A stretch of DNA of 64,000 bases from Hydrolagus colliei (taxonomy: Eukaryota): the NCBI GenBank assembly GCA_035084275.1, contig CM068756.1, positions 14,136,001-14,200,000 of the forward strand, read 5' to 3'. The notes below the pieces were generated by a model that saw nothing but the letters and a program-made list of their open reading frames with translations, did no database searches and was not told where the DNA came from. Numbering within the stretch: position 1 is the first letter of the stretch; each line of letters begins with the position of its first letter. Position numbers and translations under genes: made by a program. Shown piece after piece: positions 19,712 to 56,126 of the stretch.

Positions 19712-20900
19712 AAACAACAACAACAACAACTTGGATTTATATAGCGCCCTCCAAGTAGGATGGCGTCTCAGAGCGCTTCCCAATAGCGGATCCCGAGCCA
19801 GGGGAGGGGGAAAAAGGTGACTGAAAGCGCAGTCGCAAAGAAAGGTCTTTAGCAGAGACCTGAAAGTAAGAAGAGAGGGAGCAAGGTGAAGGGAGTGAGG
19901 AAGAGAGTTCCAGAGCCTCGGGGCATATTGGCTGAAGGCATGGCCGCTGATGGTGGAGCAGAGAATTCGGGGGACAAGGAGGAGGCCAGACCCGGTAGAG
20001 TGAAGGCAATGGGTGTGGTTGTGAGGAGAGAGGAGGTCAGAGAGGTATGGTGTGCAGAGGAGTGGAGACATTTGTAAACAAGAGTGAGGATCTTGAAATC
20101 GATCCTCTCCGGGACAGGGAGCCAGTACAGTCTGGCAAGGACTGGGGTAATTGGGGAGTGGAGTTTGGTACGGGTAAGAATGCGGACGGCAGAATTCTGG
20201 ATGACCTGCATTGTATGAATGGTAACGGAGGGGAGACCGGTGAGGAGGGCATTTGAATAGTCCAGCCGAGAGGTAGCAAAGGCATGGACCAGGATTTTGG
20301 CGGCTTTCAGGGTGAGATATTGGTGGAGGGGCGATGCATCGGAGATGGAAGAAAGTGGTGCTGGTGAGGGACGGATGTAGGGGAGGAAGGATAATTAGGG
20401 ATCAAATCTGACCCCTATGTTGCATATGGGTTCAGAAAGTTTCAGATCGGGTATTTGGAGGAGGTGAGAGCCATGGGATTGAAGAAGTTGACGAGAGCCA
20501 AAGATTATGGCTTCCATCTTGTCAACATTGAGCTGAAGGAAATTGGCGCTCATCCAGCTCCTGATGTCTGACAGGCAGGCTGACAGAACATCAGGGGACT
20601 GAGGGTTGCAAAGTGAGGTGGACAAATAGACTTGGGTGTCATCTGCATACATGTGGAATTATTCCCCATTTCTGTGGATGACATCCTCAAGAGGGAGCAT
20701 GTGGATTAGGAAGAGGAGGGGGCCAAGGATGGATCCTTGGGCTACCCCACAGGTAACTGGGAGGAAACATTGTTTGTATAGATGTACCGCTGGCGGTTTG
20801 TGAGGTAGGACTCGAACCAGCAAGTGCGGTCCCACTGAGGTGGATGACGGAGGACAGGCAGTGGAGGAGCATGTTGGGTCAAAAGTGGAGGAGAAGTTAC
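19712..20900 (-). mobile_element. L2 LINE RT/3' fragment
   Basis: ORFs [30 protein letters not shown]; (TTG)n tail. Confidence 0.88.
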
Positions 20901-21305
20901 CAGGCTGCCAATGGAGTCTGTCTAGCAACGGGGAACCAGTAGAGTCTAGCTAGGTCCATCTTGGTGGTTGAACTCATTTTGCCTAGGCTGGACGATTGCA
21001 TTGTTGAAAATACAGTCTTTCGTGTGAAATATTAAATCAAGGTCCCATCTGTCTGTTCAGATGGATGATAAGGATCGCGTGGCACTACTCCAAAAGAGAA
21101 GGAAGTTTCTTCTGCTGTCCAGACCAACAATCACCCAAATATAGTTTGTCATTCACTTTGTGGCTGTTTGTTGGACAATATTGCAGGCAGATGTGATGCC
21201 ACATTTGCCTGCTAAATACACAATAACTACAATAATGATGTGAAGTGATTTAAGACATCACACTGATTTGAAAGGCATGAAATACTAGGATTATCAGTAA
21301 CTTAC

Positions 21306-21419
21306 CTCCACAGTTGTTGAATTGACATTGTTTCCAAATGAAGAAGAGCAGGACAAGAAATGCAAACCCAGCCCCTCCACATCCAAATATCCACAAGGAA
21401 AGGGGAATATCGTTACTGG
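21306..21419 (-). CDS. Gene 2 transmembrane exon, not in the ORF track
   Basis: tgtcttacag| and |gtaagt. 114 nt, the same length as the gene 3/4 TM exons, with SLW..GC...AFLV...KQCQ shared. Confidence 0.85.
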
Positions 21420-27400: not shown

Positions 27401-29616
27401 TATAATTTGTATTTTATTATCAACAACACTCCGAGATTCAATGTACATCATTTTATATTTGTAATTTGTAAAGTTAGAGCGCTCTCCTCATAACTGAGAG
27501 ACCTAAGTTTGATTCCCAGCAGGGTGAATTGTTGAGTAACTTTCTTTAGTCCACATTCTTCTGTTTACCTAGTAGTAAGTAGTTGATTGATAGATTGCTG
27601 TTCTGGGTGTAATAATTCCTTGAAAAAAATAATAACAACGATAAATTGGTCACTTCAATCCATGATTATTTATGGGACACTGCTGCGATTCACCCACCAA
27701 ACACTGGTTCGGCCTCACCTGGAACATTAATAATAATAATTCTTGCATTTTGATATAGCGCTTTTCATATCTTGTCAACGTCTCAAAGTGCTTCACAGAA
27801 TACACTGTAAAGTGAATTGAATGTATATTTGTGGGCGAAACGCGGCAGCCCATTGCGCACAGCAGTGTCCCACAAACAGTCATGGATTGAAATGACCAAT
27901 TTTATTATTGTGTTTTTTTTGGAGCGATTATTATTAGGCGTTTGGAGTAAGGAAACCGCCCAAGATTTCGCCCTGATCTGCCTGGATTCAAACAAAGGTC
28001 TCACGCTTGTAAGGCGAGTGCTCTAACTAATGAGCTACAGGACTCCACATGAGAATATGAGTTCTGTTCTGGGCACCATACTTTAGGAAGGATACCAAAG
28101 GATTGGAGAGAGTTCAAAGGAGATTTAAGAAGATTGTATCAAGAAAGAGGTACTTCAGTTATCAGGAGAAGCTAGAAAAACCAGGATTATTCCCATTGGA
28201 GCAGAGAAGGTTAAGCAAAGATGTAATAGAAGTTTTCAAAATTATTAGGGGATTTGATAGGGTGAACAAAGAGAAACTATCTCCAATGGCGAGTGGGTCA
28301 GCAGCCTGGGGACGCCAGTTGAAAATAATTGTTAAAAGAAACAGAGTGGAGGTGAGGAGAAATACTTCCATGAGGCGATTTGTTTGGATCTGGAAGCATT
28401 GCCTGAGAGGTTGGTGGAAGCTGGTTTGATAACAACGTTTAAGAGAGAAGTAGATCATTATTTGCAGCGCTATGGAGAAAGCGTGGGTGCGTGGGCTTGA
28501 TTTGGACAGTTCTTTTCAAAGAGTCAGCACAGACACGATGGGCTGAATGGCTTCCTCCTGCGCTATATAATTCTATTTTCGATGATTGTATAAAAATATA
28601 CAGTCAATTAGGTGTTCCGTGGATCCTTCCTGGCTGGGCGAAATCTTGGGCAAGTTTCCTTACTTCACATGCCTCACATGCCCATAATCCTTCAAGAAAA
28701 CCCCCAATAATAATTTAGTTATTCAATCCATGACTGTTTGTGGGACACTGTTATGCGCAATTTGCTACGGCATTTCACCCACAAAATTTACAGTCAATTG
28801 ACTTCACAGTATATAATGCAAAGTGCTTTGAGATGTCTACCAGATGTGAAAAACACTACATCAAATGCAAAGATTGTTGTTATAATTATTATAATTTACA
28901 GTATATGCTTTGAAGCACTTTGAGATGCCTCGAAGACATAATAAGGTGATGTATCAAATGCGAGGATTATTATTATTATTTAGGGAATTTCATTTACATT
29001 AACACTAAAAGGTAAAGTGCAATACTAAATGCAGATTGGCTTCAAATATTTATGGTACTTCATTTATTTTGTAGTATTCACAAACAGTGGTATTGAAAAC
29101 CCCTCTCCTCTGGTGATTTAAGTTGAGATATGTGTTGAATAGTAGCAGCGGCCATTTACTTACCGTGGATAACCAGTGATGTTCCAGTTCCATTTGTCAT
29201 TCCTCTTTCCCAACATCTCACTCCACAGTAATAGGCTCCTGAGTCCTGGAGACTGATGTTCAGCAGCTGAAGGGAAGCTTCCCCACTCTGGGTAAGGAAC
29301 CGTTTCCTGCCGTCTGAGCCCGGCTGGAGATACTCATTCTCACCCAGTTTCCACCACTCAACAGTCACAGCGGAATTATCAGAAGGGGAGAAAATGCATC
29401 TGAAGGTAACATTGGCAGCTACGATGGCAACAGTGGTTTCAGGGGTTTGGGTCACTTTGAGGGGAACATCGGCAGCCACTGTCAAAGATAAATGCAAACT
29501 TTATGTATATGTATTTATCAAATAATATAAAAACATTGATTAAGAGAACCATATCGAATACCTGGGCCAATGGCGAGAATCACGAGGTACAGAAACACAA
29601 TCCGTTTCAAAATCAT
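21306..29616 (-). CDS. Gene 2: VJ-C1-TM Ig-superfamily receptor (exons 29616-29562, 29478-29164, 26517-26206, 21419-21306)
   Basis: All exons join in phase 1 with canonical sites: MILKRIVFLYLVILAIGP-V-AADVPLKVTQTP...CIFSP...WWK...DSGAYYCGVRCWERGMTNGTGTSLVIH-A-TPMHP...CETDEFYPED..WYK..YTCLVSHLSLK...-A-SNDIPLSLWIFGCGGAGFAFLVLLFFIWKQCQFNNCG. Confidence 0.85.
21780..22720 (-). mobile_element. Degenerate L2-type AP-endonuclease fragment
   Basis: ORF 21963-22331 TTHIHDHTLNQV...AISDHHFI resembles the APE C-terminal TH..GHTLD...SDH motifs. Confidence 0.65.
23272..24000 (-). mobile_element. L2 LINE 3' fragment
   Basis: ORFs 23348 and 23708 (FITSRLDYANALL, FKILVL). Confidence 0.85.
24372..24727 (+). 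mobile_element. L2 LINE 3' fragment
   Basis: Same 3' end and (TTG)n tail as 14320-14700. Confidence 0.8.
25001..25311 (-). mobile_element. Full-length copy of the same SINE
   Basis: Head, core and tail all present. Confidence 0.85.
25328..25972 (-). mobile_element. L2 LINE 3' fragment with internal deletions
   Basis: ORFs 25395 and 25711 (LARLHWLP; NLGVRFE). Confidence 0.8.
26206..26517 (-). CDS. Gene 2 C1-set domain exon
   Basis: ORF 26120-26578. ttttttcacag| and |gtaag, 312 nt. LVCETDEFYPEDITITWYK, YTCLVSH. Confidence 0.92.
26736..27225 (-). mobile_element. L2 LINE 3' fragment
   Basis: Same family 3' end. Confidence 0.8.
27728..28048 (-). mobile_element. Full-length copy of the same SINE
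   Basis: Head, core and tail all present. Confidence 0.85.
28055..28590 (+). mobile_element. CR1 LINE 3' fragment
   Basis: ORF 28103 ERVQRRF...LFPLEQRRL...VFKIIRGFD. Confidence 0.8.
29164..29478 (-). CDS. Gene 2 V-set (VJ-type) domain exon
   Basis: ORF 29156-29497. ctttgacag| and |gtaagt, 315 nt. C...WW...D-SG-AYYC...NGTGTSL. Confidence 0.92.
29562..29616 (-). CDS. Gene 2 leader exon
   Basis: MILKRIVFLYLVILAIGP, 55 nt, donor |gtatt. Shares VFLYL with the gene 3/4 leaders. Confidence 0.8.
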
Positions 29617-34568: not shown

Positions 34569-34734
34569 ATCACCATAGTCTATGGCTGAAGCCCAGTAGT
34601 AAGTACTTGGCTAAGCTGTATCTGAAACAAAGCGTAAGAATTCCATGTTTTGGTGTTTGATTTATTTTATTCAATTCTATCGAAGATATAGATTGACCAA
34701 ATTAAACCCAACACGTTAGGTTCGATAAATGTTG

Positions 34735-34740
34735 TTTATT
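34735..34740 (-). terminator. Candidate poly(A) signal AATAAA for gene 3 (equivalent at 50673-50678 for gene 4)
   Basis: First canonical hexamer I found downstream of the stop codon in each copy. Confidence 0.4.
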
Positions 34741-34789
34741 TGAGATCTACAAAACCACTTCACAGTGTTACAATTCACAGCCTTGGATG

Positions 34790-35593
34790 CCTCAATATCC
34801 AAGGCTGTACTCTCCACCTCACAAAGCCAATCAGGAACCTCGGCATCATGTTCGATCAAAAACTTTCCTTCCTCCCCCACATCCGCGCCTTGACCGGCAC
34901 CGCTTATTTCCACCTGCGCAACATTGCCAGGCTCCGCAACTATCTTACCCCCCGCGCTGCCGAAACACTCGTGCACGCGTACATCACCTCACGGCTGCAC
35001 TACGGAAACTCTCTCCTCGTCGGCCTCCCCAGTTCCTCCATTCACAGGCTGCAGGTCATCCAAAACTCTGCAGCCCGTGTACTATCCCGCACCCGCCTCC
35101 GCGACCACATAACCCCCACCCTCGCCCGTCTCCACTGGCTCCCCATCCTCCAGAGGATCGAGTTCAAGATCCTCGTCCTCACCTACAAGGCCTTACACGG
35201 CCTTGCCCCGCCCTATTTAACCAATCTACTCTCCCCCTACACGCCCACCCGGACCCTCCGTTCAGCAGGACTTGGCCTGCTCCAAGCCCCCCGCCCGAAC
35301 CGCCCCACCATCGGAGGCCGGGCCTTCAGTTTCTCCGCTCCCACCCTATGGAATGCCATCCCTCAATCCCTCCGTCTCGTTTCTTCCCTTTCCTCTTTCA
35401 AGGCCGGTTTGAAGACTTTCCTCTTCGACCGTGCCTTTTGTTCCACCCCGAATTTTTCGACCTCCCCTTCGTGTTTCACCCCTTCCCAAACACTCCCCTC
35501 TCAGCTCGGGTCACACGCCTCCTGTGCAGCGCCTTGGGACGTCCTCCCGACGTGAAAGGTGCTCTATAAATGTAACTTGTTGTTGTTGTTGTT
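34790..35593 (+). mobile_element. L2 LINE 3' fragment (open 271 aa), copy-1 specific
   Basis: ORF 34740-35555, nearly the same protein as 58235-59191; (TTG)n tail. Absent at about 50695. Confidence 0.92.
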
Positions 35594-35932
35594 AGAAACT
35601 TCACAGTGTTAGAAATCTGGTCCCAGATTTGTATTGGTATATTTTGTTCCAGTGATATAACAGCTTCATTGATTTTATAAACGATTATAGTTGATAGCAC
35701 AGCGACATTATCAGATTAGGATTTAACAATTTTGAAGATGAAATTGGATCGAGTTCATAAATGATGGTTAATAAGAATGGAATCGGGAAAAGGGTAAATG
35801 ATGTATTTCTGCAACTGTCAAAGCAGTGATACACCAGCAGACCAGACCAGCATTGATACACACACTGTCACTTGTCCACATTGACAGGGATCTGTGACTG
35901 ACATGCAGAGGTAATTGTCTATTATTGTGACA

Positions 35933-36097
35933 TTATGCGGCTGCTGACTCCGTGACAGTGACAGCTTTGTAGTTTCCGACATTTACCTCCGCATACTCTG
36001 AATTCTTGCCGCCAGGTTTAGCTTTTCCTGTTTTTTTGGAGCGAGGGAAATCCAGATCAGCGTAGGTCAGCTTGTCAGTGGCGGCTCCTCGCTTGGT
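35933..36097 (-). CDS. Gene 3 terminal ITIM exon
   Basis: ttgttttcag| TKRGAATDKLTYADLDFPRSKKTGKAKPGGKNSEYAEVNVGNYKAVTVTESAAA*. Confidence 0.87.
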   Translation of the reverse strand, partial: TKRGAATDKLTYADLDFPRSKKTGKAKPGGKNSEYAEVNVGNYKAVTVTESAAA

Positions 36098-39000
36098 CTG
36101 AAAACAACAATGTTTGGGATTGTCTTTTTGTTGGTTCCATGTATAGATTTACATAGAATGGTACAGGAACTGAGCAGCCGCTGTTTATACTTCACATTTC
36201 CTCCATTCTTACTTATTTTCTTCTAAAAATCTCTAATCTTTTCTCCTCGTCTCCGCAACATGGTTGCGTTATGTTATTCCAAACTCATCACCCCATGGCC
36301 AATTGGTGAATGTATTTCAAACTGAGATATGTAACTGTAGATTTAAGGCTCTAGATCTTAGCGATGAGCTGACAGCTGCTTTGGTTGGTGCAGATCAGTT
36401 AATCCTGGAATTCCCGATTGCTCTATGGGAACTTGAAATCTCAGGATGGCTGGGTCAGTATACAGTTATACACATGATCCTCGTTAATTTATTTGCAGAA
36501 TTGTTTATTCATATCTAAAGATTCAATCTTAGAATATTATGGCCCAGAAAGTAAGTTTGCTCATCGGACACGTGCTGTTAATTTGAAAGAATTGTGTATA
36601 GAGTCCCATTTACCTGCCTTTTCTCCAACACTCCTTAAAATTCATCTGTTTTTACATATCCCCATTATCTTCAGATAAAGGAATTATGTTGTTTCAACCC
36701 AGAAGGCTGAACATATTCAAAAACCAAATACAGAATACAAATGAGGTAGAAGATTGGAGAAGGGGACAAAATCATAACGATCAAACCAATGAAGCCTATT
36801 TACCAAACCCGTTCAACATTTTTTACATGTTGTTTACCTGGGCGTATACTGTCCTCTCCTCCTGTTGTTTAGGTCTAGGAGTTTTATTGGAACTTTTTAA
36901 ATCCAATGTTACATAAGCCACGTTGTCACCCACTGCTCCCTCCCCCGTCTGTAAAACAAAGTATAGAGTTAAATGGTTGTTCAGTTTCCTTCCTAGGTCT
37001 GTGCTCTTTGATTATGGTATTGATTAAGTAGGGATTTTAGGGGAAACAACGGCTACTGTTGAGTTCAAATATTAATGGCACATAACATCCAGTAAGTAGA
37101 TCGAGATCTCTCCAGAAGCAGAGAAAATTATGTTTCCAATTGATACTTTGCCATCCACCAATACGAAAATATGTTGCAGAACTGATTAGATGAATTCAAC
37201 AAGAATTCTCACTTCAAGTATTATCTCTTAAAATATCCTGGGATTAGCCCTGTTGCTAGGCACAGGCCTGACACTGAAGGATTACTCAAAAGGTAAATTA
37301 CTTGTTTATTGGAGTAACAATTTAATCCTTTAAAGGGGAATAAATAGGTCTATTTATTCCTATTAAGGAAAGGTTGAAAGCTTTGCGTTCATTGTCCAAT
37401 TAAACGTAAACTCTGTCTTGTTGGGGTGGGATGAGATTATTGTCTGTCTTGTCTTAAACTCTGTCTTGTTGGGGTGGGATGGTATGCTGGCGAATGATAA
37501 TCAGAATAACTTGGCGATACACTTCATCGTGGTTTATGGGACCATATTATGCGCAAATTGGTTGTAGCAAATAGAGTCGCTACAAAGACAAGGATTAGAA
37601 GCATTTTAAGATGATTAGAATTATAGGATCCACATTGATAATGAGTAAATTGGTCCATTGGTCACCCAAACTCTTTGGTGAAAAACTTATAATAGTAATA
37701 ATAATCCTTGCTTTTGATATAGCGCTTTTCACATCTTCTCGGCATCTCAAAACGCTCCATGGGAATATACTGCAAAGTGAATTGACTGTATTGCAAACAG
37801 CAGTGTCCCACAAACAGTTGTGGATTGAAATGAAATTTTTAGAAACATACCCGTTCTTCAAGATTGCCCGATTGAGTCAGGTTTCCCTTTGATCCTAAAT
37901 GTGAATAAAATTTACTGAATTAAATATTTACCCAATTTTAATGTTAACAATAAAATCATGTAATTATTCTACATTTTGGGATGAGTGAAATCCAAATATT
38001 CTCCTGCATTATTTACCCTCCACCTGAATCTGCATGTCACTCATACTTTCTTAAATCCTTAACACTGTGGGACTCTTTCCGTTGAATATTTAAAAGGTGA
38101 AACTTGGCGATGGCTAACCACTATTCCTCAATTCTTAAGAAACTTGGTTGTTTCCTGCAAGCTGAGCCTTGGTTTCTCTCCTGGGACTCTCAATAATAAA
38201 AATATATTTTTAATGTACCAATTTCAATGTAATACATTGCTGAATTCTGTTAAACAATAACAAATAACATGTGTAAAGTGCCTTTCACGTCGGGAGGTTG
38301 TTTACTGATAAACATACACCTGGCGCTAATCCCTGCATTTGTTTGAGACCATTCGTCAGTACAGTTACTTACAAATGCACAGAATTCATCCAATTATAAG
38401 GCAGTTGCAATACTGTATATTGAATCAGATTTCTGACATTGGATGTTGGAAAAGGAGAAATTCTGGGAAACTAACATTCACCTTGTGAAAGTGTTACGGG
38501 AATGAATCTGTTGTAATAACTACAAGTAATTGATGTTGTATAATCACAGCGTCACAGAACTCTACTATCATGGAAATAAGAATCAAGTCACTTTGTCTCT
38601 TTGCTAATAACCATTGGTGCTTTCGATGGTTTCATATCAAAGTGTAATGTTCACAATTAATTGCAATAAAATCTGAAGTTTCTTACCGTTTTTCTTCTTT
38701 AATTGGCAACGCTTCCCAATTATGATCAAAATCACCAGAAATGCGACCACACTCACAGCACATCCACCCCATAGTGAATAACCGGTTGGATTTTCAATCC
38801 CTGGAGAAATAGTACACACTGAGGTGAGACTGTACATTGCATAGGGGAAGGATTTATAGATTCAGTAGAATAGAAATGTTATGCATGTCACCTATGAATT
38901 ATATCTTGCACTGATTACATGTAAGTATTAAGCACGGTAAATGGTTTAAATATCATGTCTAATCTTAATCTGTGTATTTATTGAAAGAGGAATAAAAATT

Positions 39001-41771
39001 ACAAGGAGACCATCACTGAAAACAGTTTGATATTCACAGGTGTGAAACAGATCGACATCTGCTCTCGCTTATTTTTATTATTGCTCTTGAATCACACAGG
39101 CGAGGGCGACACTTGGAATAACACAAGAAGCGGAACATCGATTTTCAGAGAATACGTGGATTACAAAATCAAAATACAAAGCATTCATTGTAGAATAAGA
39201 CAACTGTACATAGTGGCATCTGATCACAGCAATGAAACATGCTGACTAGATTTGAGGAACATGGTGGGAATGGAAAGACATTTGATGAATCACGTGTCCT
39301 GAGCTGAAACTGAGGTTTTGAAAATTGGTCAGTTTTACGATGTGTTGATAATATCCACAATCGATAAGTAGATAGTATCGGTTTGGTTTAATGAAATGCT
39401 TGATGATTCACACCAAATGTTCCACATTCCAACAGTATAATGTATTTGATCAACATCTTGCACAACCCCCTCATCACTAATCTCAACACATTTGTCTCTT
39501 ATCAACTCTGGCATCGCTTCCTATCCCCACAGGTCTCCCGGGAGAGCAAGTCACATTCCATCCCTCAAGTCACGGGCAGGAGCTGCTGAACATTGACTGT
39601 TCCTCGGGTCTCTATCCTCAGCCTCTGCCCTTCACTATCTAGATGTTCCCACTTGGCGACAAATCGCTTCAGAGGATTCAATGAAAGGCGTTGTACAAAT
39701 ACAACTTTGTTGTTGATGTTGTTTACGAATCAATGCGGCTAAACATCCCTATGAGAATTGAATTAACAACAGTTGGGTTTTTAAAACTCTTTTAGAATCT
39801 TACCTGCTTTAGGTTTTGAGATGGTGTAGGTGGCAATAGCTGAATTCTTGAGGGTGATGTGAGACACCAGACAGGTATAAACAGATACGCTCTGGACAGA
39901 CTGTGTGTCTTCAATAGAGCTAGAGACCATATAGAGTTCCCACGAGTTCTGCTTTTCTATGGTTACTGTCTCTTCCACCATTATTCCTGATGTTGGTGTA
40001 ATTTCATTCCCACCTTTATACCATATGAGGGTGAAATCCTTTGGGTAAAACGCAGTAGTTTCACACACAATTGTCCGATGCTTAGTTGAATTCCTAGAAA
40101 AAATCCTTAGTGGAGTTGGGGGAACTGTAGAACAGATAATGGAGGAAAATCATATTAATTTTGATCAATCAGCGGGAGAAACTTTATCTTAATTCATTTC
40201 TTTGCAATCTCTCGATTCCTGAGTGCAAATGGAGATTTCTTTAGATTCACAAATATTCCTCTCACAGCAGCAGAAGCTTCCTCCTGCTGTAATTACCCTT
40301 CGGTTTTTATCAATTAATGTTGATTCGTAATCGTTGTCTTGCATATTATTACTATTATTGTGACTAAGATTATTTGGCGGAATTGATCGCTGCAAACTCT
40401 CGATCAGAGGAGACAGAGGATTCCTGACAGGTGTGAGAACACTGTATTATTCTGGCTCAATTGGTAGCATTCTCGCATCTGAGTTAGAAGGATATGGGAT
40501 CAAACTTGACATCGGGACTTGGAATTCACACAGTTGATGTGGAAACATTTGCTGCAATGCCGTTGTTAGGGTGAGAAATTAAATATGGTTTAATTCAACC
40601 GGTTATGTTGAACATTAAAGATCTCATGGCAATATTCAAAAACAATTTCTCTGACAGCCTACCCTTCAAAGTTAAAAACATGACCATCCACCTCATGGCT
40701 GTTGTGGGACATTGCTGTGAATAATTTGGCGGCTGTGTTTTCTCATAAGGTACCTAGTCTCATCGTTTTCCAAAATTTGTGATGCTTTGGGAGGTTTCAG
40801 TGGCATGACAAGGTGCTGGAGCAAATGAAAGGATTGTATTATCTCAGCATTGAGAGATTTTGATCAGGTAAAGAGGGAAACAGTGAGTCTGTAACAAAAG
40901 TCCATAAGTTAGAATCATTACCATGGAATAAAGGAAAGGTTGAATTGTGATGTTACTGAGAGGCGCTTGGGTCCAAAACAAAATAATGGCTGAAGCAGAA
41001 TCCATAAAGCTGTTAAAATGAATTTTACAGCCATTTCCTTTGTCTTCTACACAGATTTTGGATTACGTATTTGAATAATATGGATTGATTTTGCATGTAA
41101 CCTTTGTAACATTAGAAGTTTGTGAAATTATTTGTTAATTGTTGTACGATTAGAGTTGCATTATTTTATGTTTCAGTTGGATAGGGGTTATTTTTAATGT
41201 AATTTTCAAATATTTTCACTCTTCATCCACACTCACCGCACACAATTAAGCTTGATCCAGGTCCTGTTCCAATTACTGATCCCTGACGGATCACTGTACA
41301 GTGATAGACTCCAGAGTCCTGTAAACTCACATTCAGGAGCTGGAAGAAGCCGCTCCCTTTGCCTTTCACACCAAATGTTTTCCTGCTGTCCGCCTGTGTG
41401 TCCAAGTAGCCGTCCTCACCCTCCTTCTCCCACTTCACCTCCTCTCCTGAAACGTCTTGAGAGAAGGGAAAAATACAGCGGAAAGTGACGTTTGTCCCTC
41501 TGATGGCAGCCACACGTTTGGGGATTTGTGTCACTTTCTCTGTAGAATCGCCAGCAACTGTCAGAAAATAAATTCAAAAGATTGATTTCACAGATAATAT
41601 GCCGTGGACAAAAGCAAGCGAGTGAATAGACTAAAAAGTAAGTACATATGATAAATTGCACAAGGAAACAAGCTTGCACATATTTCATAGAAGAACTGAG
41701 TTGTAGAATAATAAAATACCTGTTGAAATAATATGTAAGACGGACAGATACAGAAACACAACACTCCCCAT
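35933..41771 (-). CDS. Gene 3: VJ-C1-TM inhibitory receptor with four cytoplasmic tyrosine motifs, 375 aa (exons 41771-41720, 41557-41237, 40124-39804, 38800-38687, 37894-37851, 36948-36838, 36097-35933)
   Basis: Seven exons of 52+321+321+114+44+111+165 = 1128 nt, all GT-AG, consistent phases 1,1,1,1,0,0, single open frame to TAA. Confidence 0.88.
36838..36948 (-). CDS. Gene 3 first ITIM exon
   Basis: tttgttttacag| TGEGAVGDNVAYVTLDLKSSNKTPRPKQQEERTVYAQ |gtaaac, 111 nt phase 0-0. Confidence 0.85.
37851..37894 (-). CDS. Gene 3 44-nt cytoplasmic linker exon (phase 1-0)
   Basis: ttcacatttag| GSKGNLTQSGNLEER |gtatgt. Supplies exactly the phase change needed, and is identical in gene 4. Confidence 0.72.
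38687..38800 (-). CDS. Gene 3 TM exon
   Basis: GIENPTGYSLWGGCAVSVVAFLVILIIIGKRCQLKKKN; ctccag| and |gtaag. Confidence 0.9.
39804..40124 (-). CDS. Gene 3 C1-set exon
   Basis: ORF 39781-40068. CETTAFYPKDFTLIWYK, YTCLVSHITLK; tctacag| and |gtaag. Confidence 0.92.
40450..40810 (+). mobile_element. Older, decayed Deu-domain SINE in the gene 3 V-C1 intron
   Basis: ggctcaattggtagcattctcgcatctgagttagaagg head and aaagatctcatggcaatatt core. Similar cores at about 18640-18730, 21040-21230 and 24180-24360. Confidence 0.55.
41237..41557 (-). CDS. Gene 3 V-set (VJ-type) exon
   Basis: ORF 41223-41534. NVTFRCIFP, VKWEK, DSGVYHC, GTGPGSSLIV; |gtgagt. Confidence 0.92.
41720..41771 (-). CDS. Gene 3 leader exon
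   Basis: MGSVVFLYLSVLHIIST + G, donor |gtatt. Confidence 0.82.
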
Positions 41772-46244: not shown

Positions 46245-46309
46245 AATGTAGCCCTGGATTGAGCAATAGGCCACTAACTTGCCATTTAATGCTGATCAAT
46301 GGTAAGCAC

Positions 46310-47118
46310 TAGGGTCCGGTGATATATCGATATATCGCTAAAACCCGATATAATTTTCATATCGATACGCCGATATAGGCATTTCAAAAATATGGATATA
46401 TCGAAAAATCAATATATCGAATTAAAAAATCGGAATACGTGCACACTGAACTACAAGACCCAGAATGCTCATCTCTATACACAATGCACAGACCGAGGTG
46501 CAAAGCCACCATATTGTATTCATAGTCCTCAAATACAATATACAGATATGCAAGGGTTGGGGGGGGGGGGGTGGGGGGAGGGGAGAGAGACAGCTGGGGG
46601 GGGGGGAGAGAGACGGCTGGGGGGAGGGAGGGGGAGTGAGACGGCTGGGGTGGGGGAGGGGAGAGAGACGGCTGGTGGGGGCGTGGAGGGAGAGAAAGAC
46701 GGCGGCGGGGGTGGAGGAGGAGAAAGACGGCTGGGGGGGGTGGGGGGGAGAGTGTGGGAGAGAGGGATGGCGGCGGGGGGCGAGAGGAGAGAGGGACGGC
46801 AGCGGTGGGGGTGGTGGGGGGAGAGACGGGGTGGATGTGATAATATACAGATAGATAGAGATTGGGGGGATGTGAGAGAGGAGAGAGACACAGAGACACA
46901 GACAGAAAAACACAGAGATGGAGAGAGTGGGTGTGAGAGACACAGAGAGAGAAAGATATTTACCTCCTGAGGAGATAGGCCTGAATGCGCGCGCACCCCG
47001 ATTGCGCTGCGCACGCATGCGCAGTACGAAAACCCCAAAATTATCGATATTTCAGTATATCTCGATATGAGCCCGTCGATGTATCTAAATCGGAAAATTT
47101 CCATATCAACGGACCCTA
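46310..47118. mobile_element. Non-autonomous hAT-type DNA transposon (MITE), 809 bp
   Basis: TIRs TAGGGTCCGGTGATAT / ATATCAACGGACCCTA, 8-bp TSD GTAAGCAC (46302-46309, 47119-47126), subterminal (A)TATCGAT / CCGATAT repeats. Confidence 0.88.
46555..46960 (+). repeat. G-rich low-complexity tandem repeat inside the hAT MITE
   Basis: Repeating GGGG(G)AGGGAGAGAGACGGCT-like unit. Confidence 0.85.
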
Positions 47119-50100
47119 GTAAGCACATGAGCAACCAAGAAAGTTGAATTGGAGAAAAGAAGAAGCAGGGGTTATTTTCTAGGTGTTTTCCGAATCACTA
47201 AGGATATAAATAAACTGTCAGCAAATAATATGTTTGATGAAGGAAAGGAATAATGCAGTGGAAATTGATGTTTATCCCTCTAATAACAATCATACATTCT
47301 GCTCGTAGTGTTACTTTGACTGAAAAATTACCAGTAACTAACAGAAAAAAGGTGCAGATTGTTCCAGTAAAATAACATCCCCCTCCCATGAATCTGATCA
47401 GTTTTGACTCTGATAACAACGCTGCACAAATGTGTAGCCACTTTACATGTTTCTGTGTCTTTGACTTCCTGTCTTGGAGGTTTTCAGGAAATTGAATTCA
47501 TGTTGTGAGCGTAATTCGTAATTACATGTAATCATTAAAGCTACGTCAACCTTCTGAATCAGAAGTGAGAGGGCGACCAAATGAGCCAGCCTGATACGCA
47601 ATGCATAATTCATGTTGCAGTCATCTGCAGCCTGGAAGTTCTTTGTTTCCTTGAACAGGTTTGTTTCACACAGAATGATCAATACCATTTATTAACTTCA
47701 AGTGAACCCATGATTACATTTGTACAATTGTGGCAATATATTCAGACGATCAGTTGATGCCAATAACTACAGTAGGGAAGCCAGTAGCTTGAAAACCAGA
47801 TTCTTGATCGTAAAATTAGGAGACAAAATATGTCCCAGATTATAATTTTCACTGAGAGCTGTAAACATGGTACAATTTGTCAAATAATGTGGTAAATGTG
47901 GGTAAAACAAGGCAGCGAATTGCGCACAACAATTTCCCACAAATAGTCATTGGTTGAATGTATATCTATAGAATGTTAAGTCTCAATCATTTAGTCCAAT
48001 TATTTTCCTATGTGCCATTCACACACAGAGTGAATAAATATTCCAGATACATTGCAATAATATATTGTTGCTACCATACAGAGGTATAATTTAATTTTTA
48101 ATGACTGTTGGTATGTAGCTTGCAGTATCAGGACTAAATGTTGCTTTACTTTACCACCGCTGAATACTTACTGGTACAAATGTGGAAGTGGAAGTGATGT
48201 GGGTGTCTGTCACACAGTAACTGCTGCCTCGGGGATCAATATGAATCCTGCTCATTGTGTGTTTTCATGCAATGATTATTCCTACTTGAATCACAATGAA
48301 TAGTTTGCTCAGCTGAGGTGGCATCTGAGGTACTCTATCTATCAGCGCCAGAGTATAACCATGTAACCACAATCTAAGTTCCTATTCAGCATCAAAATAA
48401 ATGACTCATATGCTGTTTCATTAATCGATTCCACCTTTTGACCACTGGGTGAATTTCTTTCTCTCGCTGAATAATTCTTGTGCTGCTTTTTAAATTTTTT
48501 TATAGTACTGTACTAATGACTGGGTACATTTGGGGGTTGGTGATTTATGGTCTAAATAAATCAATATTGATTTAATATTGAATTGAAATATTAAACTCTA
48601 ACGAAGAATAAAGCACACCGATTAATGCATAATAATAATAATCATTGCATTTGATGTGGCGCTTCTAATGTCTTCTAGATAACTCAAAATGTTTCACAGA
48701 ACTCAGTGGAAAGTGAATTGAGTATGTATTTTGTGGGCGTAACGCAGCAGCCAATTGTGCACAGGAGAGTCCCACAAACTAAGGAAACTTCCCCAAAGTT
48801 TTACCCTGACCTGCTTGGAATTGAACCCTCTTGCAAGGCGAGTGCTCTAACCAATAAGCTACAGGATTCCACTATATTTAATGATAAACCCTGGAATCAG
48901 CCCTGAAATACTCTTATCCCTAGTTGCCAGCGGTTTGACAGCACAGCCCCATCAGTGGCAGCATCATTGAGGATTTACAGAGATTTACAAAGGGAACATT
49001 GGTCTGTGAAGGGCAATCACCATTTGTATCATTGAATTTGAGTCTTGATTTCAGTCTTGAGACATTGTATGCAACTGACTCAACACATCAATGTGAAAAC
49101 CTTTTAAGCAACTGCCTGGAATGTGTGACAATATAAATAGGAGCACAACGATCCTGCTTAAGTGTTCATGAAATTCAATTGAATTTAAACCAGTGAATAG
49201 ATACAAAAGCATGTTGATTAAACACTTTAAAGAAAAAAACAATCTTTGCTTTGATTTCATCAAATGGAACGTTGCAGTGTGACATAGAAACAGATGCAAT
49301 GAGGCACATAAACTTTACTGATGGCCAATAAAAGGCTTTGTGGTGTGAGAGTGTAACTGTGATACACACACACACATCTATATATGTAGATGGAGATATA
49401 TGCGTATACGTGTGAAATTGCTACACCTAAACAGACATACGCTCCATCAGTTCATGTGTTGCATAAATGGCCTGTGAGTGTGGACAATCGTGTTCTTTAT
49501 TTAATCAGGTACAGCAGAGACAAGGGTAAAAAATAAACGTTGCTTCATTTCAGCTTCATTTTGCACATACTTGCATAACGCCCACACAATAACCTTTACA
49601 TTGTGGCAGATGAATTGCATCACATTTTCTTAGATAACTGTTAAGGTTATTTACATCAGTTTACTTCTAATTTGAGTCTCTGTTATTGTCATCCAATGAG
49701 CCAACATAATACATTATAGTGAAACAAAACATTACCCTCACTGTACACACTGAACTGATGTACATTTACTTCCAGCTGCATGTAATAATAATACTTGCAT
49801 TTGATATCACACTTTTCATGTCTTCTAGATGTCTCAATGCACTTCACAGTATATACTGTAACTGTATATTTGTGGGTGAAACATGGCAGTCAAATGCTCA
49901 CAACAGTGTTACTATTAGACATGTGGAGTAAGAAAACTTGACCAAGGTTTCACCCTGCCTGGAATTGAACCAAGGTCTCTTTCTTGCAAGGCGAATGCTC
50001 TAACCACTGAGCTACAGGACTTTTAAATGTAACAGATTGAGAATTGTTTTTAGAATTGATCACATGCTCTACATACAAATTTTGTAGTCATCAAACCGTA

Positions 50101-50508: not shown

Positions 50509-51029
50509 ATCACCATCATCTATGGCTGAAGCCCAGTAGTAAGTACTTGGCTAAGCTGTATCTTAAACAAAGCGTAAGAATTCCATTATGGTGTTTAATT
50601 TATTTTATTCAATTCTATCGTAGATATAGATTGACCAAATCAAACCCAACACATTAGGTTCGATAAATGTTGTTTATTTGAGATCTACAAAACAGTGTTA
50701 GAAACTATTGTAAACTGGTCCCAGATTTGTATTGGTATATTTTGTTCCAGTGATATAACAGCTTCATTGATTTTATAAACGATTATAGTTGATAGGACAG
50801 CGACATTATCAGATTAGGATTGAACAATTTTGAAGGTGAAATTGGATCGAGTTCATAAATGATGGTTAATAAGAATGGAATCGGGAAAAGGGTAAATGAT
50901 GTATTTCTGCACTGTCAAAGCAGTGATAAACTAGCAGACCAGACCAGCATTGATACACACACTGTCACTTGTCTACATTGACAGGGATCTGTGACTGACA
51001 TGCAGAGGTAATTGTCTATTATTGTGACA

Positions 51030-52042
51030 TTATGCGGCTCCTGACTCCGTGACAGTGACAGCTTTGTAGTTTCCGACATTTACCTCCGCATACTCTGAAT
51101 TCTTGCCGCCAGGTTTAGCTTTTCCTGTTTTTTTGGAGCGAGGGAAATCCAGATCAGCGTAGGTCAGCTTGTCAGTGGCGGCTCCTCGCTTGGTCTGAAA
51201 ACAACAATGTTTGGGATTGTCTTTTTGTTGGTTCCATGTATAGATTTACATAGAATGGTACGGAAACTGAGCAGCCGCTGTTTATACTTCACATTTCCTC
51301 CATTCTTACTTATTTTCTTCTATAAATCTCTATTCTTTTCTCCTCGTCTCCGCAACAAGGTTTATGTTATATTATTCCAAACTCATCACCCCATGGCCAA
51401 TTGGTGAATGTATTTCAAACTGAGATATGTAACTGTAGATTTAAGGCTCTAGATCTTAGCGATGAGCTGACAGCTGCTTTGGTTGGTGCAGATCAGTTAA
51501 TCCTGGAATTCCCGATTGCTCTATGGGAATTTGAAATCTCAGGATGGCTGGGTCAGTATACACATGATCCTCGTTAATTTATTTGCTGAATTGTTAATTC
51601 ATATCTAAAGATACAATCTTAGAATATTATGGCCCAGAAAGTAAGTTTGCTCATCGGACACGTGCTGTTAATTTGAAAAAATTATGTACAGAGTCCCATT
51701 TACCTGCCTTTTCTCCAACACTCCTTAAAATTCATCTGTTTTTACATATCCCCATTATCTTCAGATGAAGGAATTATGTTGTTTCAACCCAGAAAGGCTG
51801 AAGATATTCAAAAACCAAATGCAGAATACAAATGAGGTATTTGAAGATTGGAGAAGGGGACAAAATCATAACGATCAAACCAATGAAGCCTATTTACCAA
51901 ACCCGTTCAACATTTTTTACATGTTGTTTACCTGGGCGTATACTGTCCTCTCCTCCTGTTGTTTAGTTCTTGGAGTTTTATTGGAACTTTTTAAATCCAA
52001 TGCTACATAAGCCACGTTGTCACCCACTGCTCCCTCCCCCGT
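51030..52042 (-). CDS. Gene 4 ITIM exons (52042-51932 and 51194-51030)
   Basis: Near-identical to the gene 3 ITIM exons; 3 amino-acid differences by hand. Confidence 0.85.
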
Positions 52043-55000
52043 CTGTAAAACAAAGTATAGAGTTAAATGGTTGTTCAGTTTCCTTCCTAGGTCTGTGCTC
52101 TTTGACTATGGTATTGATTAAGTAGGGATTTTAGGGGAAACAACGGCTACTGTTGAGTTCAAATATTAATGGCACATAACATCCAGTAAGTAGATCGAGA
52201 TCTCTCCAGGAGCAGAGAAAATTATGTTTCCAATTGATACTTTGCCATCCACCAAGATGAAAATATGTTGCAGAACTGATTAGATGAATTCAACAAGAAT
52301 TCTCACTTCAAGTATTATCTCTTAAAATATCCTGGGATTAGCCCTGTTGCTAGGCACAGGCCTGACACTGAAGGATTACTCAAAAGGTAAATTACTTGTT
52401 TATTGGAGTAACAATTTAATCCTTTAAAGGGGAATAAATAGGTCTATTTATTCCTATTAAGGAAAGGTTGAAAGCTTTGCGTTCATTGTCCAATTAAACG
52501 TAAACTCTGTCTTCTTGGGGTGGGATGAGATTATTGTCTGTCTTGTCTTAAACTCTGTCTTGTTGGGGTGGGATGGTATGCTGGCGAATGATAATCAGAA
52601 TAACTTGGCGATACACTTCATCATGGTTTATGGGACCATATTATGCGCAAATTGGTTGTAGCAAATAGAGTCGCTACAAAGACAAGGATTAGAAGCATTT
52701 TAAGATGATTGGAATTATAGGATCCACATTGATAATGAGTAAATTGCTCCATTGGTCACCCAAACTCTTTGGTGAAAAACTTATAATAGTAATAATAATC
52801 CTTGCTTTTGATATAGCGCTTTTCACATCTTCTCGGCATCTCAAAGCGCTTACGAATTTTTAAAAACATACCCGTTCTTCAAGATTGCCCGATTGAGTCA
52901 GGTTTCCCTTTGATCCTAAATGTGAATCAAATTTACTGAATTAAATATTTACCCAATTTTAATGTTAACAATAAAATCATGTAATTATCCTACATTTTGG
53001 GATGAGTGAAATCCAAATATTCTCCTGCATTATTTACCCTCCACCTGAATCTGCATGTCACTCATACTTTCTTAAATCCTTAACACTGTGGGACTCTTTC
53101 CGTTGAATATTTAAAAGGTGAAACTTGGCGATGGCTAACCACTATTCCTCAATTCTTAAGAAACTTGGTTGTTTCCTGCAAACTGAGCCTTGGTTTCTCT
53201 CCTGGGACTCTCAATAATAAAAATATATTTTTAATGTACCAATTTCAATGTAATACATTGCTGAATTCCGTTAAACAATAACAAATAACATGTGTAAAGC
53301 GCCTTTCACGTCGGGAGGTTGTTTACTGATAAACATACACCTGGCGCTAATCCCTGCATTTGTTTGAGACCATTCGTCAGTACAGTTACTTACAAATGCA
53401 CATAATTCATCCAATTATAAGGCAGTTGCAATATTGTATATTGAATCAGATTTCTGACATTGGATGTTGGAAAAGGAGCAATTCTGGGAAACTAACATTC
53501 ACCTTGTGAAATTGTTACAGGAATGAATCTGTTGTAATAACTACAAGTAATTGATGTTGTATAATTACAGCGTCACAGAACTCTACTATCATGGAAATAA
53601 GAATCAAGTCACTTTGTCTCTTTGCTAATAACCATTGGTGCTTTCAATGGTTTTATATCAAGGTGTAATGTTTACAATTAATTGCAATGAAATCAGAATT
53701 TTCTTACTGTTTTTCTTCTTTAATTGGCATTGCTTCCCAATTATGATCGAAATCACCAGAAATGCGACCACACCCGCAGCACATCCACCCCATAGTGAAT
53801 AACGGGTTGGATTTTCAATCCCTGGGGAAATAGTATTCACTGAGATGAGACTGTACATTGTGTAGGGGAATGCTTTATAAATTTGGTAGAATAGATATGT
53901 TATGCAAGTCATTTATGATTTATACCTTGCAGTGATTTCGAGTAAGTATTAAGCACGGTAAATGGTTTAAATATGGTCTAATCTTAATCCGTGTTTATTG
54001 AAAGAGGAATAAAAATTAGAAGGAGACCATCATTGAAAACATTTTGATATTGACGTAGGGTTAGACAGGTGTTAGACAGATCAACATTTGTTCTCGCTTA
54101 TTTTTATTATTGCTCTTAAATCGATCACACTGAGGGCGACACACAGAATACACATGAAGCGGAATATCGATCTTCAGAGGAACCCTCACAAAATACAATC
54201 TATAAATTATAGAGTGAGACAACTGGACATAGTGGCATCTGATTGCAGCGATGAAACATGCTGACTAGCTTTGAATAAAAGGAGGAACATGGTGGGATGG
54301 AAAGACATTTGATGTCTTTCCATCCCACCAAACTTCAGCTCAAGACACGTGTCCTGAGCTGAAGTTTTGAAAATCATTCAGTTTTACGATGTGTTGATAA
54401 TATCCACAATCGATAAGTAGATAATATCGGTTTAGTTTTAATGAAATGTTTGATGATTCACATCAAATGTTCCACATTCGAACAGTGTAATATATTTGAT
54501 CAACATCTTGCACAACCCCCTCATCACTAATCTCAACACATTTGTCTCCTATCAACTCTGGCATCGCTTCCTATCCCCACAGGTCTCCCGGGAGAGCAAG
54601 TCACATTCCATCCCTCAAGTCACGGGCAGGAGCTGCTGAACATTGACTGTTCCTCGGGTCTCTATCCTCAGCCTCTGCCCTTCACTATCTAGATGTTCCC
54701 ACTTGGCGACAAATCACTTCAGAGGATTCAATGAAATGCGTTGTACAAATACAACTTTGTTGTTGATGTTGTTTACGAATCAATGCGGCTAAACATCCCT
54801 ATGAGAATTGAATTAACAACAGTTGGGTTTTTAAAACTCTTTTAGAATCTTACCTGCTTTAGGTTTTGAGATGGTGTAGGTGGCAATAGCTGAATTCTTG
54901 AGGGTGATGTGAGACACCAGACAGGTATAAACAGATACGCTCTGGACAGACTGTGTGTCTTCAATAGAGCTAGAGACCATATAGAGTTCCCATGAGTCCT

Positions 55001-56126
55001 GCTTTTCTTTGGTTACTGTCTCTTCCACCTTTATTCCTGATGTTGGTGTAATTTTGTTCTCATCTTTATACCATATGAGGGTGAAATCCTTTGGGTAAAA
55101 TGCGGTAGTTTCACACACAATTGTCCGATGCTTAGTTGAATTCCTAGAGAAGATCCTCAGTGGAGTTGGGGGAACTGTAGAACAGATAATGGAGGAAAAT
55201 CATATTAATTTTGATGAATCAGCGGGAGAAACTTTATTTTAATTCTTTTGTTTGCAATCTCCCGATTCCTGAGTGCAAATGGAGGTTTATTTAGATTCAC
55301 AAATATCCCTCTCACAGCAGCAGAAGCTTCCTCCTGCTGTAATTACCCTTCGGTTTTTATCAATTAATGTTGATGCGTAATCGTTGTCTTACATATTATT
55401 ACTATTATTGTTATTGTGACTAAGATTATCAGGCGGAATTGATCACTGTGAACTCTCGATCAGAGGAGACACAGGATTCCTGACAGGTGTGAGAACACTG
55501 TCAGGATATGGGATCAAACTTGACATTGGGACTAGGAATTCACACAGTTGATGTGGAAACATTTGCTGCAATGCACACTCACCCTGCACAGTTAAACGTG
55601 ATCCAGGTCCTGTTCCAATTACTGATCCCTGACGGATCACTGAGCAGCGATAGACTCCAGAGTCCTGGAAACTCACATTCAGGAACTGGAAGAAGCCGCT
55701 TCCTTTGCCTATCACACCAAATGTTTTCCTGCTGTCCGCCTGTGTGTCCAAGTAGCCGTCCTCACCCTCCTTCTCCCACTTCACCTCCTGTCCTGAACCG
55801 TGTTGAGAGGAGGGAAACATACAGAGGAGAGTCACGTTCATCCCTCCGATGAGCGTCACACGTTCGGGGCTTTGATATACTTTCACTGAAGAATCATCAG
55901 CAACTGTCAGAGAATAGAGTCAAACACTGATTTCACAGATAATACGCCGTGGACAAAGCAAGCGAGTAAAGAGAGTAAAAATTGAGTTAGTATACTGTAT
56001 ATGATAATAACACATGGAAACAGGCTTGTAGATATTTCATAGAAGAAATGAGTTATATAATAATGATAAAATACCTGTTGAAATAATATGTAAGACAGAC
56101 AGGTACAGAAACACAACACTCCCCAT
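51030..56126 (-). CDS. Gene 4: paralog of gene 3, VJ-C1-TM inhibitory receptor, 375 aa (exons 56126-56075, 55903-55583, 55174-54854, 53821-53708, 52915-52872, 52042-51932, 51194-51030)
   Basis: Same seven exon lengths and splice sites as gene 3, with an open frame. Tail motifs VAYVAL, TVYAQ, LTYADL, SEYAEV. Confidence 0.88.
53708..53821 (-). CDS. Gene 4 TM exon
   Basis: GIENPTRYSLWGGCAAGVVAFLVISIIIGKQCQLKKKN, 114 nt. Confidence 0.9.
54854..55174 (-). CDS. Gene 4 C1-set exon
   Basis: ORF 54831-55118. CETTAFYPKDFTLIWYK...YTCLVSH. Confidence 0.92.
55583..55903 (-). CDS. Gene 4 V-set (VJ-type) exon
   Basis: ORF 55443-55886. NVTLLCMFP, VKWEK, DSGVYRC, GTGPGSRLTV; |gtgagt. Confidence 0.92.

Follow-up and report, generated by a model that had tools for sequence, protein, structure and literature searches.

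Two intact tandem receptor genes of Hydrolagus colliei with a SIRP-alpha-like four-tyrosine tail

A stretch of 64,000 nucleotides from Hydrolagus colliei (assembly GCA_035084275.1, contig CM068756.1, positions 14,136,001 to 14,200,000 of the forward strand) was analysed and is called the window below. It is vertebrate DNA without N, and four genes of one family were recognised in it from open reading frames with immunoglobulin (Ig) hallmarks. We focus on genes 3 and 4 and on their cytoplasmic tails, which an earlier note on this DNA had likened to the tail of SIRP-alpha. Both genes are probably intact tandem members of a cartilaginous-fish multigene family, and their product would be an inhibitory type I receptor that recruits SHP-1/SHP-2 through a SIRP-alpha-like tail. 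As judged from alignments, the tail is homologous to that of SIRP-alpha or at least shares a sequence module with it. The family is best termed SIRP-alpha-like and is not a proven SIRPA orthologue. As it is a large multigene family that already carries this label in databases, the find is real and largely expected.

Exon structure and tail motifs of genes 3 and 4

Each of the two genes has seven coding exons with canonical GT-AG sites and an intact frame of 375 aa. The predicted protein consists of a leader, a V domain carrying a J-like motif, a single C1 domain, a transmembrane (TM) segment, a short exon and two tail exons. The leader, V, C1 and TM exons of gene 3 are all joined by phase-1 introns, as is typical of the immunoglobulin superfamily (IgSF). 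The exons of gene 3 are:

41720..41771, minus strand: exon 1, start codon and signal peptide MGSVVFLYLSVLHIIST, donor in phase 1
41237..41557, minus strand: exon 2, V-set domain (Pfam V-set) with a J-like GxGSxLxV motif (GPGSSLIV), phase 1/1, AG/GT sites
39804..40124, minus strand: exon 3, single C1-set domain (Pfam C1-set, 2.1e-9), phase 1/1
38687..38800, minus strand: exon 4, stalk, uncharged TM helix LWGGCAVSVVAFLVILIIIG and stop-transfer KRCQLKKKN, ending in phase 1
37851..37894, minus strand: exon 5, 44-nt cytoplasmic exon (G)SKGNLTQSGNLEER, phase 1 to 0
36948-36838, minus strand: exon 6 (tail unit A), translated as TGEGAVGDNVAYVTLDLKSSNKTPRPKQQEERTVYAQ; acceptor ttttacag|ACG, donor CAG|gtaaac, phase 0
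36097-35933, minus strand: exon 7 (tail unit B), translated as TKRGAATDKLTYADLDFPRSKKTGKAKPGGKNSEYAEVNVGNYKAVTVTESAAA, then the stop codon (35935-35933); acceptor ttttcag|ACC

The exons of gene 4 are:

56075..56126, minus strand: exon 1, leader
55583..55903, minus strand: exon 2, V domain
54854..55174, minus strand: exon 3, C1 domain
53708..53821, minus strand: exon 4, TM exon; donor A|gtaaga, where the split codon is Arg, not Gly
52872..52915, minus strand: exon 5, 44-nt cytoplasmic exon
51932..52042, minus strand: exon 6, tail unit A (VAYVAL, TVYAQ|T)
51030..51194, minus strand: exon 7, tail unit B (LTYADL, SEYAEV) and stop codon

Exon 5 (44 nt, GSKGNLTQSGNLEER) was detected by an exon-phase scan and matches GSKGNLTQLGNPEDQ in the Callorhinchus milii model P0001. 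A direct splice from the TM exon to tail exon A was rejected because it is out of frame; the 44-nt exon restores the frame. The leader at the gene 4 copy is 94% identical to that of P0001. In the tail, three residues differ between genes 3 and 4 (tblastn identity of 95–98%).

An AlphaFold model was built with a 23-sequence family alignment that did not include gene 4. It contains two confident Ig domains (block pLDDT mostly >80), a TM helix at residues 236–265 and a disordered tail (pLDDT <50). For the V domain, the block values were mostly 83–96, with one block at 78. The earlier note had expected one C1 domain in place of the two in SIRP-alpha, and a single C1 exon was indeed found between the V and TM exons of both genes.

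Splicing of exons 6 and 7 of gene 3 (GT-AG, phase 0) yields a tail of 91 aa with four tyrosines:

36915-36913, minus strand: Y296, motif VAYVTL, unit A
36846-36844, minus strand: Y319, motif TVYAQ|T, unit A
36064-36062, minus strand: Y333, motif LTYADL, unit B
35995-35993, minus strand: Y356, motif SEYAEV, unit B

The tail peptides named in the earlier note were present on the minus strand, and its coordinates were exact; the 17 aa that it gave between VAYVTLDL and TVYAQ had to be corrected to 15 aa. The spacing of the tyrosines is 23/14/23 residues. Three of the four motifs are canonical immunoreceptor tyrosine-based inhibitory motifs (ITIMs) of the class (S/I/V/L)xYxx(I/V/L), which here go together with an uncharged TM. 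Hence, the four-tyrosine tail described earlier stands for the number of tyrosines and for three of the motifs, and fails for the second one, which is non-canonical after splicing (TVYAQT). The junction TVYAQ|TKRG is the same in the NCBI models P0001, P0003 and P0010 of C. milii.

Units A and B are paralogous (35–38% identity in tblastn, score 58, z = 8.9). Each half of the tail occupies one exon, and each unit comprises an ITIM of the form (V/L)xY(V/A)xL and a second tyrosine motif 23 residues on. Directly after SEYAE, exon B contains the sequence GAG|gtaaat (35986-35991, minus strand), which is the positional homologue of the exon A donor CAG|gtaaac (36832-36837). The homology of this cryptic donor to the donor of exon A hints at duplication of a terminal exon as the origin of exon A. 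Without splicing, read-through of exon A would give ...TVYAQVNNM*, a canonical TxYxxV motif, which hints at alternative tails at this exon.

Genes 3 and 4 lie in a tandem duplication of ~15 kb. In a self-comparison of the window, 31.6-43.8 kb corresponded to 47.6-64.0 kb. The 3' part of ~2 kb (35613-37756 vs 50712-52850) was 97.6% identical between the copies, and the identity was lower upstream. For the V domain, dN was 0.13 and dS was 0.125 (dN/dS about 1, with 29.5 non-synonymous changes), which suggests that the ligand-binding domain is diversifying between the copies. For the C1 domain, dN was 0.025 and dS was 0.10 (dN/dS 0.25). For the tail, both were 0.015 (dN/dS about 1), so that divergence was almost nil. 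As the tail regions are near-identical, this part suggests recent homogenisation, possibly by gene conversion. The pattern of V, C1 and tail divergence is the expectation for a functional, diversifying pair of immune receptors.

The C1 domain is under purifying selection, and on the basis of its dN/dS ratio genes 3 and 4 are not decaying pseudogenes. We regard it as very improbable that they are unexpressed or decaying duplicates with unused tail exons. Three observations would fit such decay: retrotransposons abound at the locus, gene 2 next to these copies retains only a relic of a tail exon, with a frameshift, and a look-up returned no exact match to the gene 3 product on record (best identity 69–72%). 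On the other side, both copies have kept their frames in full, none of the 12 splice sites is lost, the stop codons coincide, and the orthologous junctions are used in the NCBI models of C. milii.

Likeness to the SIRP-alpha tail and its limits

SIRP-alpha (SHPS-1/PTPNS1/CD172a) and the predicted product of genes 3 and 4 are both type I IgSF receptors: a V domain that carries a J-like motif stands at the N-terminus, C1-set sequence follows, and the TM is uncharged. Both have a disordered tail with four tyrosines that form two ITIM-type pairs. The V-set domain of gene 3 matches Pfam V-set, and its GPGSSLIV agrees with the GxG(T/S)xLxV form of the J-like motif of SIRPs. The four tyrosines were found as two pairs colinear with those of SIRP-alpha, with a non-canonical second motif and a number of units that varies in the family.

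The SIRPA-like protein P0051 of Gavia stellata was used as the reference. Its gene adjoins an opioid-neuropeptide (prodynorphin-like) gene, and we take PDYN to be the expected neighbour of a true SIRPA, as at the human locus. The Gavia tail reads ...NNLTYADLNF-...-SEYACIQT-...-NLTYADLDM-...-SEYASVQIPRK, with a spacing of 24/17/26.

A family profile was made from an alignment of 15 chimaera and shark sequences and was used to score 8000 candidates that shared words with the family. The best match outside the cartilaginous fishes was P0051 (E = 2.8e-39), and it was the sole strong outsider among these candidates. The family hidden Markov model (HMM) was colinear with P0051 through V, C1, TM and all four tyrosines. 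In a Smith-Waterman alignment, the window tail and the Gavia tail scored 78, with 24 of 77 columns identical (about 31%) and all four tyrosines covered. Composition-preserving shuffles scored 28 ± 5 (Gumbel p about 3e-6 for the observed 78). Simulated tails with the tyrosine spacing of SIRPA and a forced ITIM consensus, even with Ala at +1, reached a maximum of 68, and none of the 3 x 4000 simulations attained 78. The tail-only family HMM gave P0051 39.9 bits (E = 3.9e-5 at a scale of 1.8 billion sequences). Because the score exceeds both the shuffles and the ITIM-constrained simulations, and because the two HMM results point the same way, the likeness of the tail to SIRP-alpha is, on this sequence evidence, more than generic ITIM grammar.

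The tail alignment with SIRP-alpha that the earlier note had proposed as a check was thus colinear and significant. Its wording of a "near-verbatim" SIRP-alpha tail was too strong for an identity of about 31%, with LTYADLD as the only identical one of the four motifs and SEYAxV agreeing at 5/6 positions. The comparison of intron phases, also proposed there, gave a divided answer. In common are the end of the TM exon in phase 1 after a basic stop-transfer (KKKNG| vs KQSKG|) and a phase-0 intron 8–11 residues ahead of the first tyrosine. Between the TM exon and the tail, genes 3 and 4 have one 44-nt exon, whereas Gavia has exons of 22 nt and 40 nt. Moreover, genes 3 and 4 have an extra intron between the second and third tyrosines.

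It is possible, with rather less than even chances, that genes 3 and 4 are true orthologues or co-orthologues of SIRPA. One C1 domain would then have been lost or not yet duplicated, and the receptor would bind a CD47 orthologue and give phagocytes a 'don't eat me' signal. Several of the results just described are in line with this: the best match outside the cartilaginous fishes is a bird SIRPA in syntenic position, colinearity extends along the entire protein and takes in the four tyrosines, the spacing is similar, the introns next to the TM exon and at the beginning of the tail agree in phase, and the majority name at NCBI is SIRP-alpha-like.

A number of observations weigh against the SIRP-alpha-like inhibitory reading, and some of them against orthology in particular. 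Gavia SIRPA has two C1 domains and genes 3 and 4 have one, so that the V-C1-C1 order of SIRPs was not found. All four tyrosines of Gavia SIRPA lie in the last exon, whereas a phase-0 intron separates Y2 and Y3 here. The second motif of SIRP-alpha is (T/S)EYAxI, whereas that of genes 3 and 4, in its spliced form TVYAQT, has Thr at +3 and is neither a canonical ITIM nor an immunoreceptor tyrosine-based switch motif (ITSM). The inhibitory function is most likely, and it is read from motif sequence and the 23-residue pairing only. The tail halves do not pair one-to-one with the halves of SIRP-alpha: unit A scored 26 against Gavia half 1 and 49 against half 2, unit B scored 52 and 61, and the two Gavia halves scored 62 against each other. 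Family members have between 2 and 10 tail tyrosines, in alternating xxYAxL and TVYAQT-type motifs.

The database searches with the tail added to these points. An exhaustive single-sequence phmmer search of 1.84 billion proteins (E <= 1e-3) gave nothing from outside the fishes and no tetrapod SIRP-alpha; in this comparison, P0051 had 24.3 bits (E = 4.5). There were 23 matches, and the sources that were looked up were all chondrichthyan except for one tilapia protein. Of the remaining matches, one is a repetitive protein, apparently of bacterial origin, and the others resemble family members. A tail-only search of a 5.8-billion-protein database (E <= 10) returned four C. milii proteins only and no SIRP-alpha.

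The tilapia protein (LOC102081169, P0033, Oreochromis niloticus) was more similar to the tail than SIRPA was: 37.3 vs 24.3 bits in phmmer and 52.1 vs 39.9 bits with the family tail profile, the latter helped by its own repeats. It has a short extracellular part, no recognisable Ig domain in this isoform and nine tail tyrosines. Its tail units share the grammar of the chondrichthyan ones (EExxIYSDVKxGAAEDNLMYAEI... AVYSEV; ..EESDIYSDVKMGAAEDNLMYAEI..). This likeness may reflect homology, exon shuffling or convergence. The two-tyrosine module may be older or more mobile than the SIRP family.

In the ectodomain, the likeness was not specific to SIRPs either. The best PDB sequence matches of the V domain were PD-L1, single-chain variable fragments and T-cell receptor (TCR) V domains, with no SIRP in the top 60. 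The C1 domain matched IgM C-mu, SIRP-alpha (2wng, 3.4e-10 over two domains), SIRP-gamma, UrIg2 and MHC II beta, at comparable levels per domain. In a whole-protein profile search of the PDB, SIRP-alpha was sixth (97 bits), and lambda light chains had about 86 bits. Profile searches with V only and C1 only were dominated by the summed multi-domain scores of titin and Ig heavy chains and give no ranking of SIRPs per domain. The top 50 Foldseek matches of the AlphaFold model were antigen-binding fragment (Fab), TCR, PD-L1 and B7-H6 chains, with no SIRP chain. The top TM-scores (target-normalised) were 0.71 for PD-L1 and 0.66 for B7-H6, and the lowest E-values belonged to Fab and TCR chains. For these best fold matches, B7-H6/PD-L1 and Ig light or TCR chains, the likeness is that of the generic V-C1 fold; they are without the four-tyrosine tail, although some family members carry their names at NCBI. 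By sequence and model, the ectodomain is a generic module of V, J motif and single C1, and it is neutral on SIRP ancestry. The suggestion that the genes are SIRP relatives was partly upheld: the tail is colinear with SIRP-alpha, and the family profile has SIRPA as its best match outside the cartilaginous fishes, whereas the V and C1 domains are not specifically SIRP-like.

Synteny gave no help. Within +/-10 kb of six loci (five of C. milii and one of Leucoraja), no non-family gene was seen near the cluster. The window holds only family genes and retrotransposons, and no gene of the SIRPA neighbourhood (PDYN, STK35, NSFL1C).

Further results speak against orthology. The family forms a large, fast-diversifying cluster, unlike a single conserved gene, and SIRP-alpha differs from genes 3 and 4 in this respect. 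The extra tail intron, the variable number of tail units, the lack of a one-to-one match between halves, the single C1 and the absence of SIRP-specific likeness in V and C1 all point the same way.

We give a similarly low chance to a cartilaginous-fish-specific V-C1 family without any special tie to SIRPs. In that case the tail module, YAxL(D), about 23 residues and (S/T)xYAx(V/I), would have converged or been exchanged. The generically Ig-, TCR- or B7-like ectodomain fits this, as does a protein without Ig domain in tilapia whose repeated tail is equally or more similar. The units multiply by exon duplication (2 to 10 tyrosines), and the likeness of units within a lineage equals or exceeds that across lineages. 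ITIM pairs of the YADLD type also occur in unrelated receptors, e.g. G6b-B and PZR. Against convergence or exchange stand the tail score above the ITIM-constrained simulations and the shared positions and phases of the introns flanking the tail. Moreover, the best outsider of the profile is SIRPA, with colinearity also over the TM and the linker.

The cartilaginous-fish family and the possible origin of its tail unit

The highly significant matches of the spliced protein were cartilaginous-fish proteins only. The best one was a C. milii 'tyrosine-protein phosphatase non-receptor type substrate 1-like' protein, i.e. SIRP-alpha-like, with 69% identity. This is also the most common name of the relatives at NCBI; other names are SIRP beta-1-like, tapasin-related-like, NCR3-like and Ig lambda-1-like. 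The database names of the C. milii, shark and ray relatives are inconsistent and automatic.

Relatives were found by the profile search in Callorhinchus, Heptranchias, Heterodontus, Scyliorhinus, Chiloscyllium, Mobula and Leucoraja, and the tail-only search added Mustelus. The E-values of the family matches ranged from 1e-171 down to 1e-39, and the matches were colinear over the full length. Identity to the first sequence of the alignment was 35–50%, apart from gene 4 (89%). Across V, C1, TM and tail, the C. milii, shark and ray proteins (e.g. P0001, P0002, P0003 and P0010) shared 42–70% identity with genes 3 and 4. These relatives share the exon junctions, including GSKGNL... and TVYAQ|TK, and the tail consensus.

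In the 15-sequence alignment, Y296, Y333, Y356 and Ala334 were invariant, and Y319, Leu299, Thr317 and Thr332 were conserved in >=90%. The tail consensus of these sequences is xxYAxLxL..K..RPKxQEERTVYAQTKQGAxxxKLTYAxLDL..SKKT.K.K.....TEYAxx, and the J-like motif has the family consensus GNGTGSxLTV. As the number of tail tyrosines varies so widely in the family, the four-tyrosine state is, as far as these sequences tell, one state among several. Doubling of a two-tyrosine unit, separately from SIRP-alpha, may have produced it.

In C. milii, five loci span 15.22–15.61 Mb of MU249845.1, i.e. the cluster measures at least 0.39 Mb. The non-coding DNA of the window (introns and flanks) was 78–80% identical to the P0001 locus, through the intron between the tail exons. 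The P0001 model itself (MU249845.1, 15.247–15.287 Mb; 489 aa) has the order V-C1-V-partial C1 and no TM before the tail. It is probably an annotation artefact in which two tandem genes, the counterparts of genes 3 and 4, have been fused.

In the literature on SIRP, CD47 and NKp30 in cartilaginous fishes, no publication on this family was found, and none was found on chondrichthyan CD47. The UrIg paper (PMC12227049) deals with a different gene (V-C1-C2-C3) and does not mention SIRP or ITIM.

A further tentative view, which we rate well below an even chance, is that the chondrichthyan V-C1 cluster is sister to the SIRP family or stands near its ancestor. The two-tyrosine exon unit would be ancient and mobile, would pre-date the split between cartilaginous and bony vertebrates and would have multiplied independently. 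This would have happened by exon duplication in sharks and chimaeras and by intra-exon duplication in tetrapod SIRP-alpha, and the unit would have been grafted onto Ig-less proteins in teleosts. If so, the SIRP-type inhibitory pathway that recruits SHP dates to the origin of jawed vertebrates, and TVYAQT would be offered as a conserved, uncharacterised phosphotyrosine motif.

If the reading of genes 3 and 4 as SIRP-alpha-like inhibitory receptors holds, SHP-recruiting receptors of the SIRP-alpha type with paired ITIMs were present in the jawed-vertebrate ancestor or arose very early in cartilaginous fishes. In the latter, the type would have expanded into a large, fast-evolving cluster and would not have remained a single conserved gene. 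This bears on the origin of inhibitory 'self' receptors, on the evolution of paired receptors and on the age of a CD47-type axis. Nothing is overturned, as the class of molecule is well known and the relatives are already annotated as SIRP-alpha-like. The more original points are the separate exon for each two-tyrosine unit, the cryptic donor in the last exon, the variable number of units and the conserved non-canonical TVYAQT.

Proposed signalling of the tail and other contents of the window

SIRP-alpha, PZR, PECAM-1 and G6b-B carry paired ITIMs that are phosphorylated by Src-family kinases and dock the tandem SH2 domains of SHP-1/SHP-2, which inhibits activation. In PZR/MPZL1, PECAM-1 and G6b-B, two tyrosine motifs are about 22–26 residues apart, often YAxL(D) followed by xxYAx(V/I), and a single phosphatase molecule engages each pair with its tandem SH2 domains. 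These three receptors have other ectodomains, without V-J and C1, and one pair, whereas genes 3 and 4 have two.

The SHP-recruiting inhibitory reading of genes 3 and 4 is preferred because the tail has three ITIMs in two pairs and is disordered, and the TM is uncharged. The product would be a type I receptor with signal peptide, V domain, one C1 domain, uncharged TM and a disordered cytoplasmic tail of about 115 aa. Its fast-evolving V domain would engage a ligand, and Src-family kinases would phosphorylate the tail tyrosines. Pairs of phosphotyrosines ~23 residues apart would serve as docking sites for the tandem SH2 domains of SHP-1 (PTPN6) and SHP-2 (PTPN11), and activating signals in the leukocyte that bears the receptor would be dampened by the phosphatase.

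TVYAQT may bind something other than SHP. Going further, the tail could be a switch or adaptor platform on which TVYAQT recruits SAP/EAT-2-like adaptors, Csk or other SH2 proteins, with activating or context-dependent signalling; we consider this unlikely. It would agree with the finding that TVYAQT, or a motif close to it, recurs in chimaeras, sharks and rays and forms the most conserved stretch of the tail (EERTVYAQTKQG), and with its failure to match the ITIM consensus. An ITSM has Val at +3, with which Thr is isosteric, and read-through of the unspliced exon 6 would give the canonical TVYAQV. Against a switch or adaptor function, each tail has three canonical ITIMs, and their pairing is of the kind usual for docking of SHP-1/2.

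By its sequences, the multigene cluster with its fast-evolving V domain resembles a paired-receptor family that has diversified more closely than it does one conserved pair of SIRP-alpha and CD47. The CD47-like 'don't eat me' axis or natural killer missing-self pathway that the earlier note had proposed is, for genes 3 and 4, purely conjectural.

The other two family genes of the window are:

3616-3999 (V), 6988-7491 (C1) and about 7790-7890 (TM), plus strand: gene 1
29159-29500 (V), 26123-26578 (C1) and about 21300-21430 (TM, uncharged), minus strand: gene 2

Gene 1 (3616-7890), which lies on the other strand, is a V-C1-TM member that has diverged further (30–38% identity to C. milii proteins), and its TM segment is uncharged (WWIYACISAGVLLLLLTIIIMLACCC). 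An HMM scan detected no ITIM exon downstream of it within the window. For gene 2, the HMM scan of the window found no intact ITIM exon and only one frameshifted relic (..CTLDLTGSTENRIVHNDNNVLYTEV, 17765-17884, minus strand). The relic is unit-B-like, frameshifted relative to the acceptor, and has lost its first tyrosine. As it is the sole tail-like sequence downstream, the ITIM tail of gene 2 may have been lost. An isolated V-exon fragment in the space from gene 3 to gene 4 (47204-47338, minus strand) is 42–46% identical to the V domains of the family and is probably a relic of another duplication.

The intergenic space contains retrotransposon debris:

57434-61109, minus strand: retrotransposon debris
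58106-59188, plus strand: retrotransposon debris
61201-61980, plus strand: retrotransposon debris
34692-35552, plus strand: retrotransposon debris

It includes a Gag-like/reverse-transcriptase open reading frame of 665 aa beside an RNase H frame, similar to a long terminal repeat retrotransposon. Two further reverse-transcriptase fragments are similar to long interspersed elements. One retrotransposon fragment is copied just 3' of gene 3 and upstream of gene 4, and the copies are 95% identical. Two stretches (about 20000-24000 and 46300-47100) are GC-skewed, G-rich and of low complexity, with Gly/Glu-rich or Pro/Ser-rich open frames; they are probably derived from simple repeats or transposons. 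A repeat of ~300 bp that resembles a short interspersed element occurs at 1787, 14981, 24999, 27728, 32517, 33727, 42065 and 56414.

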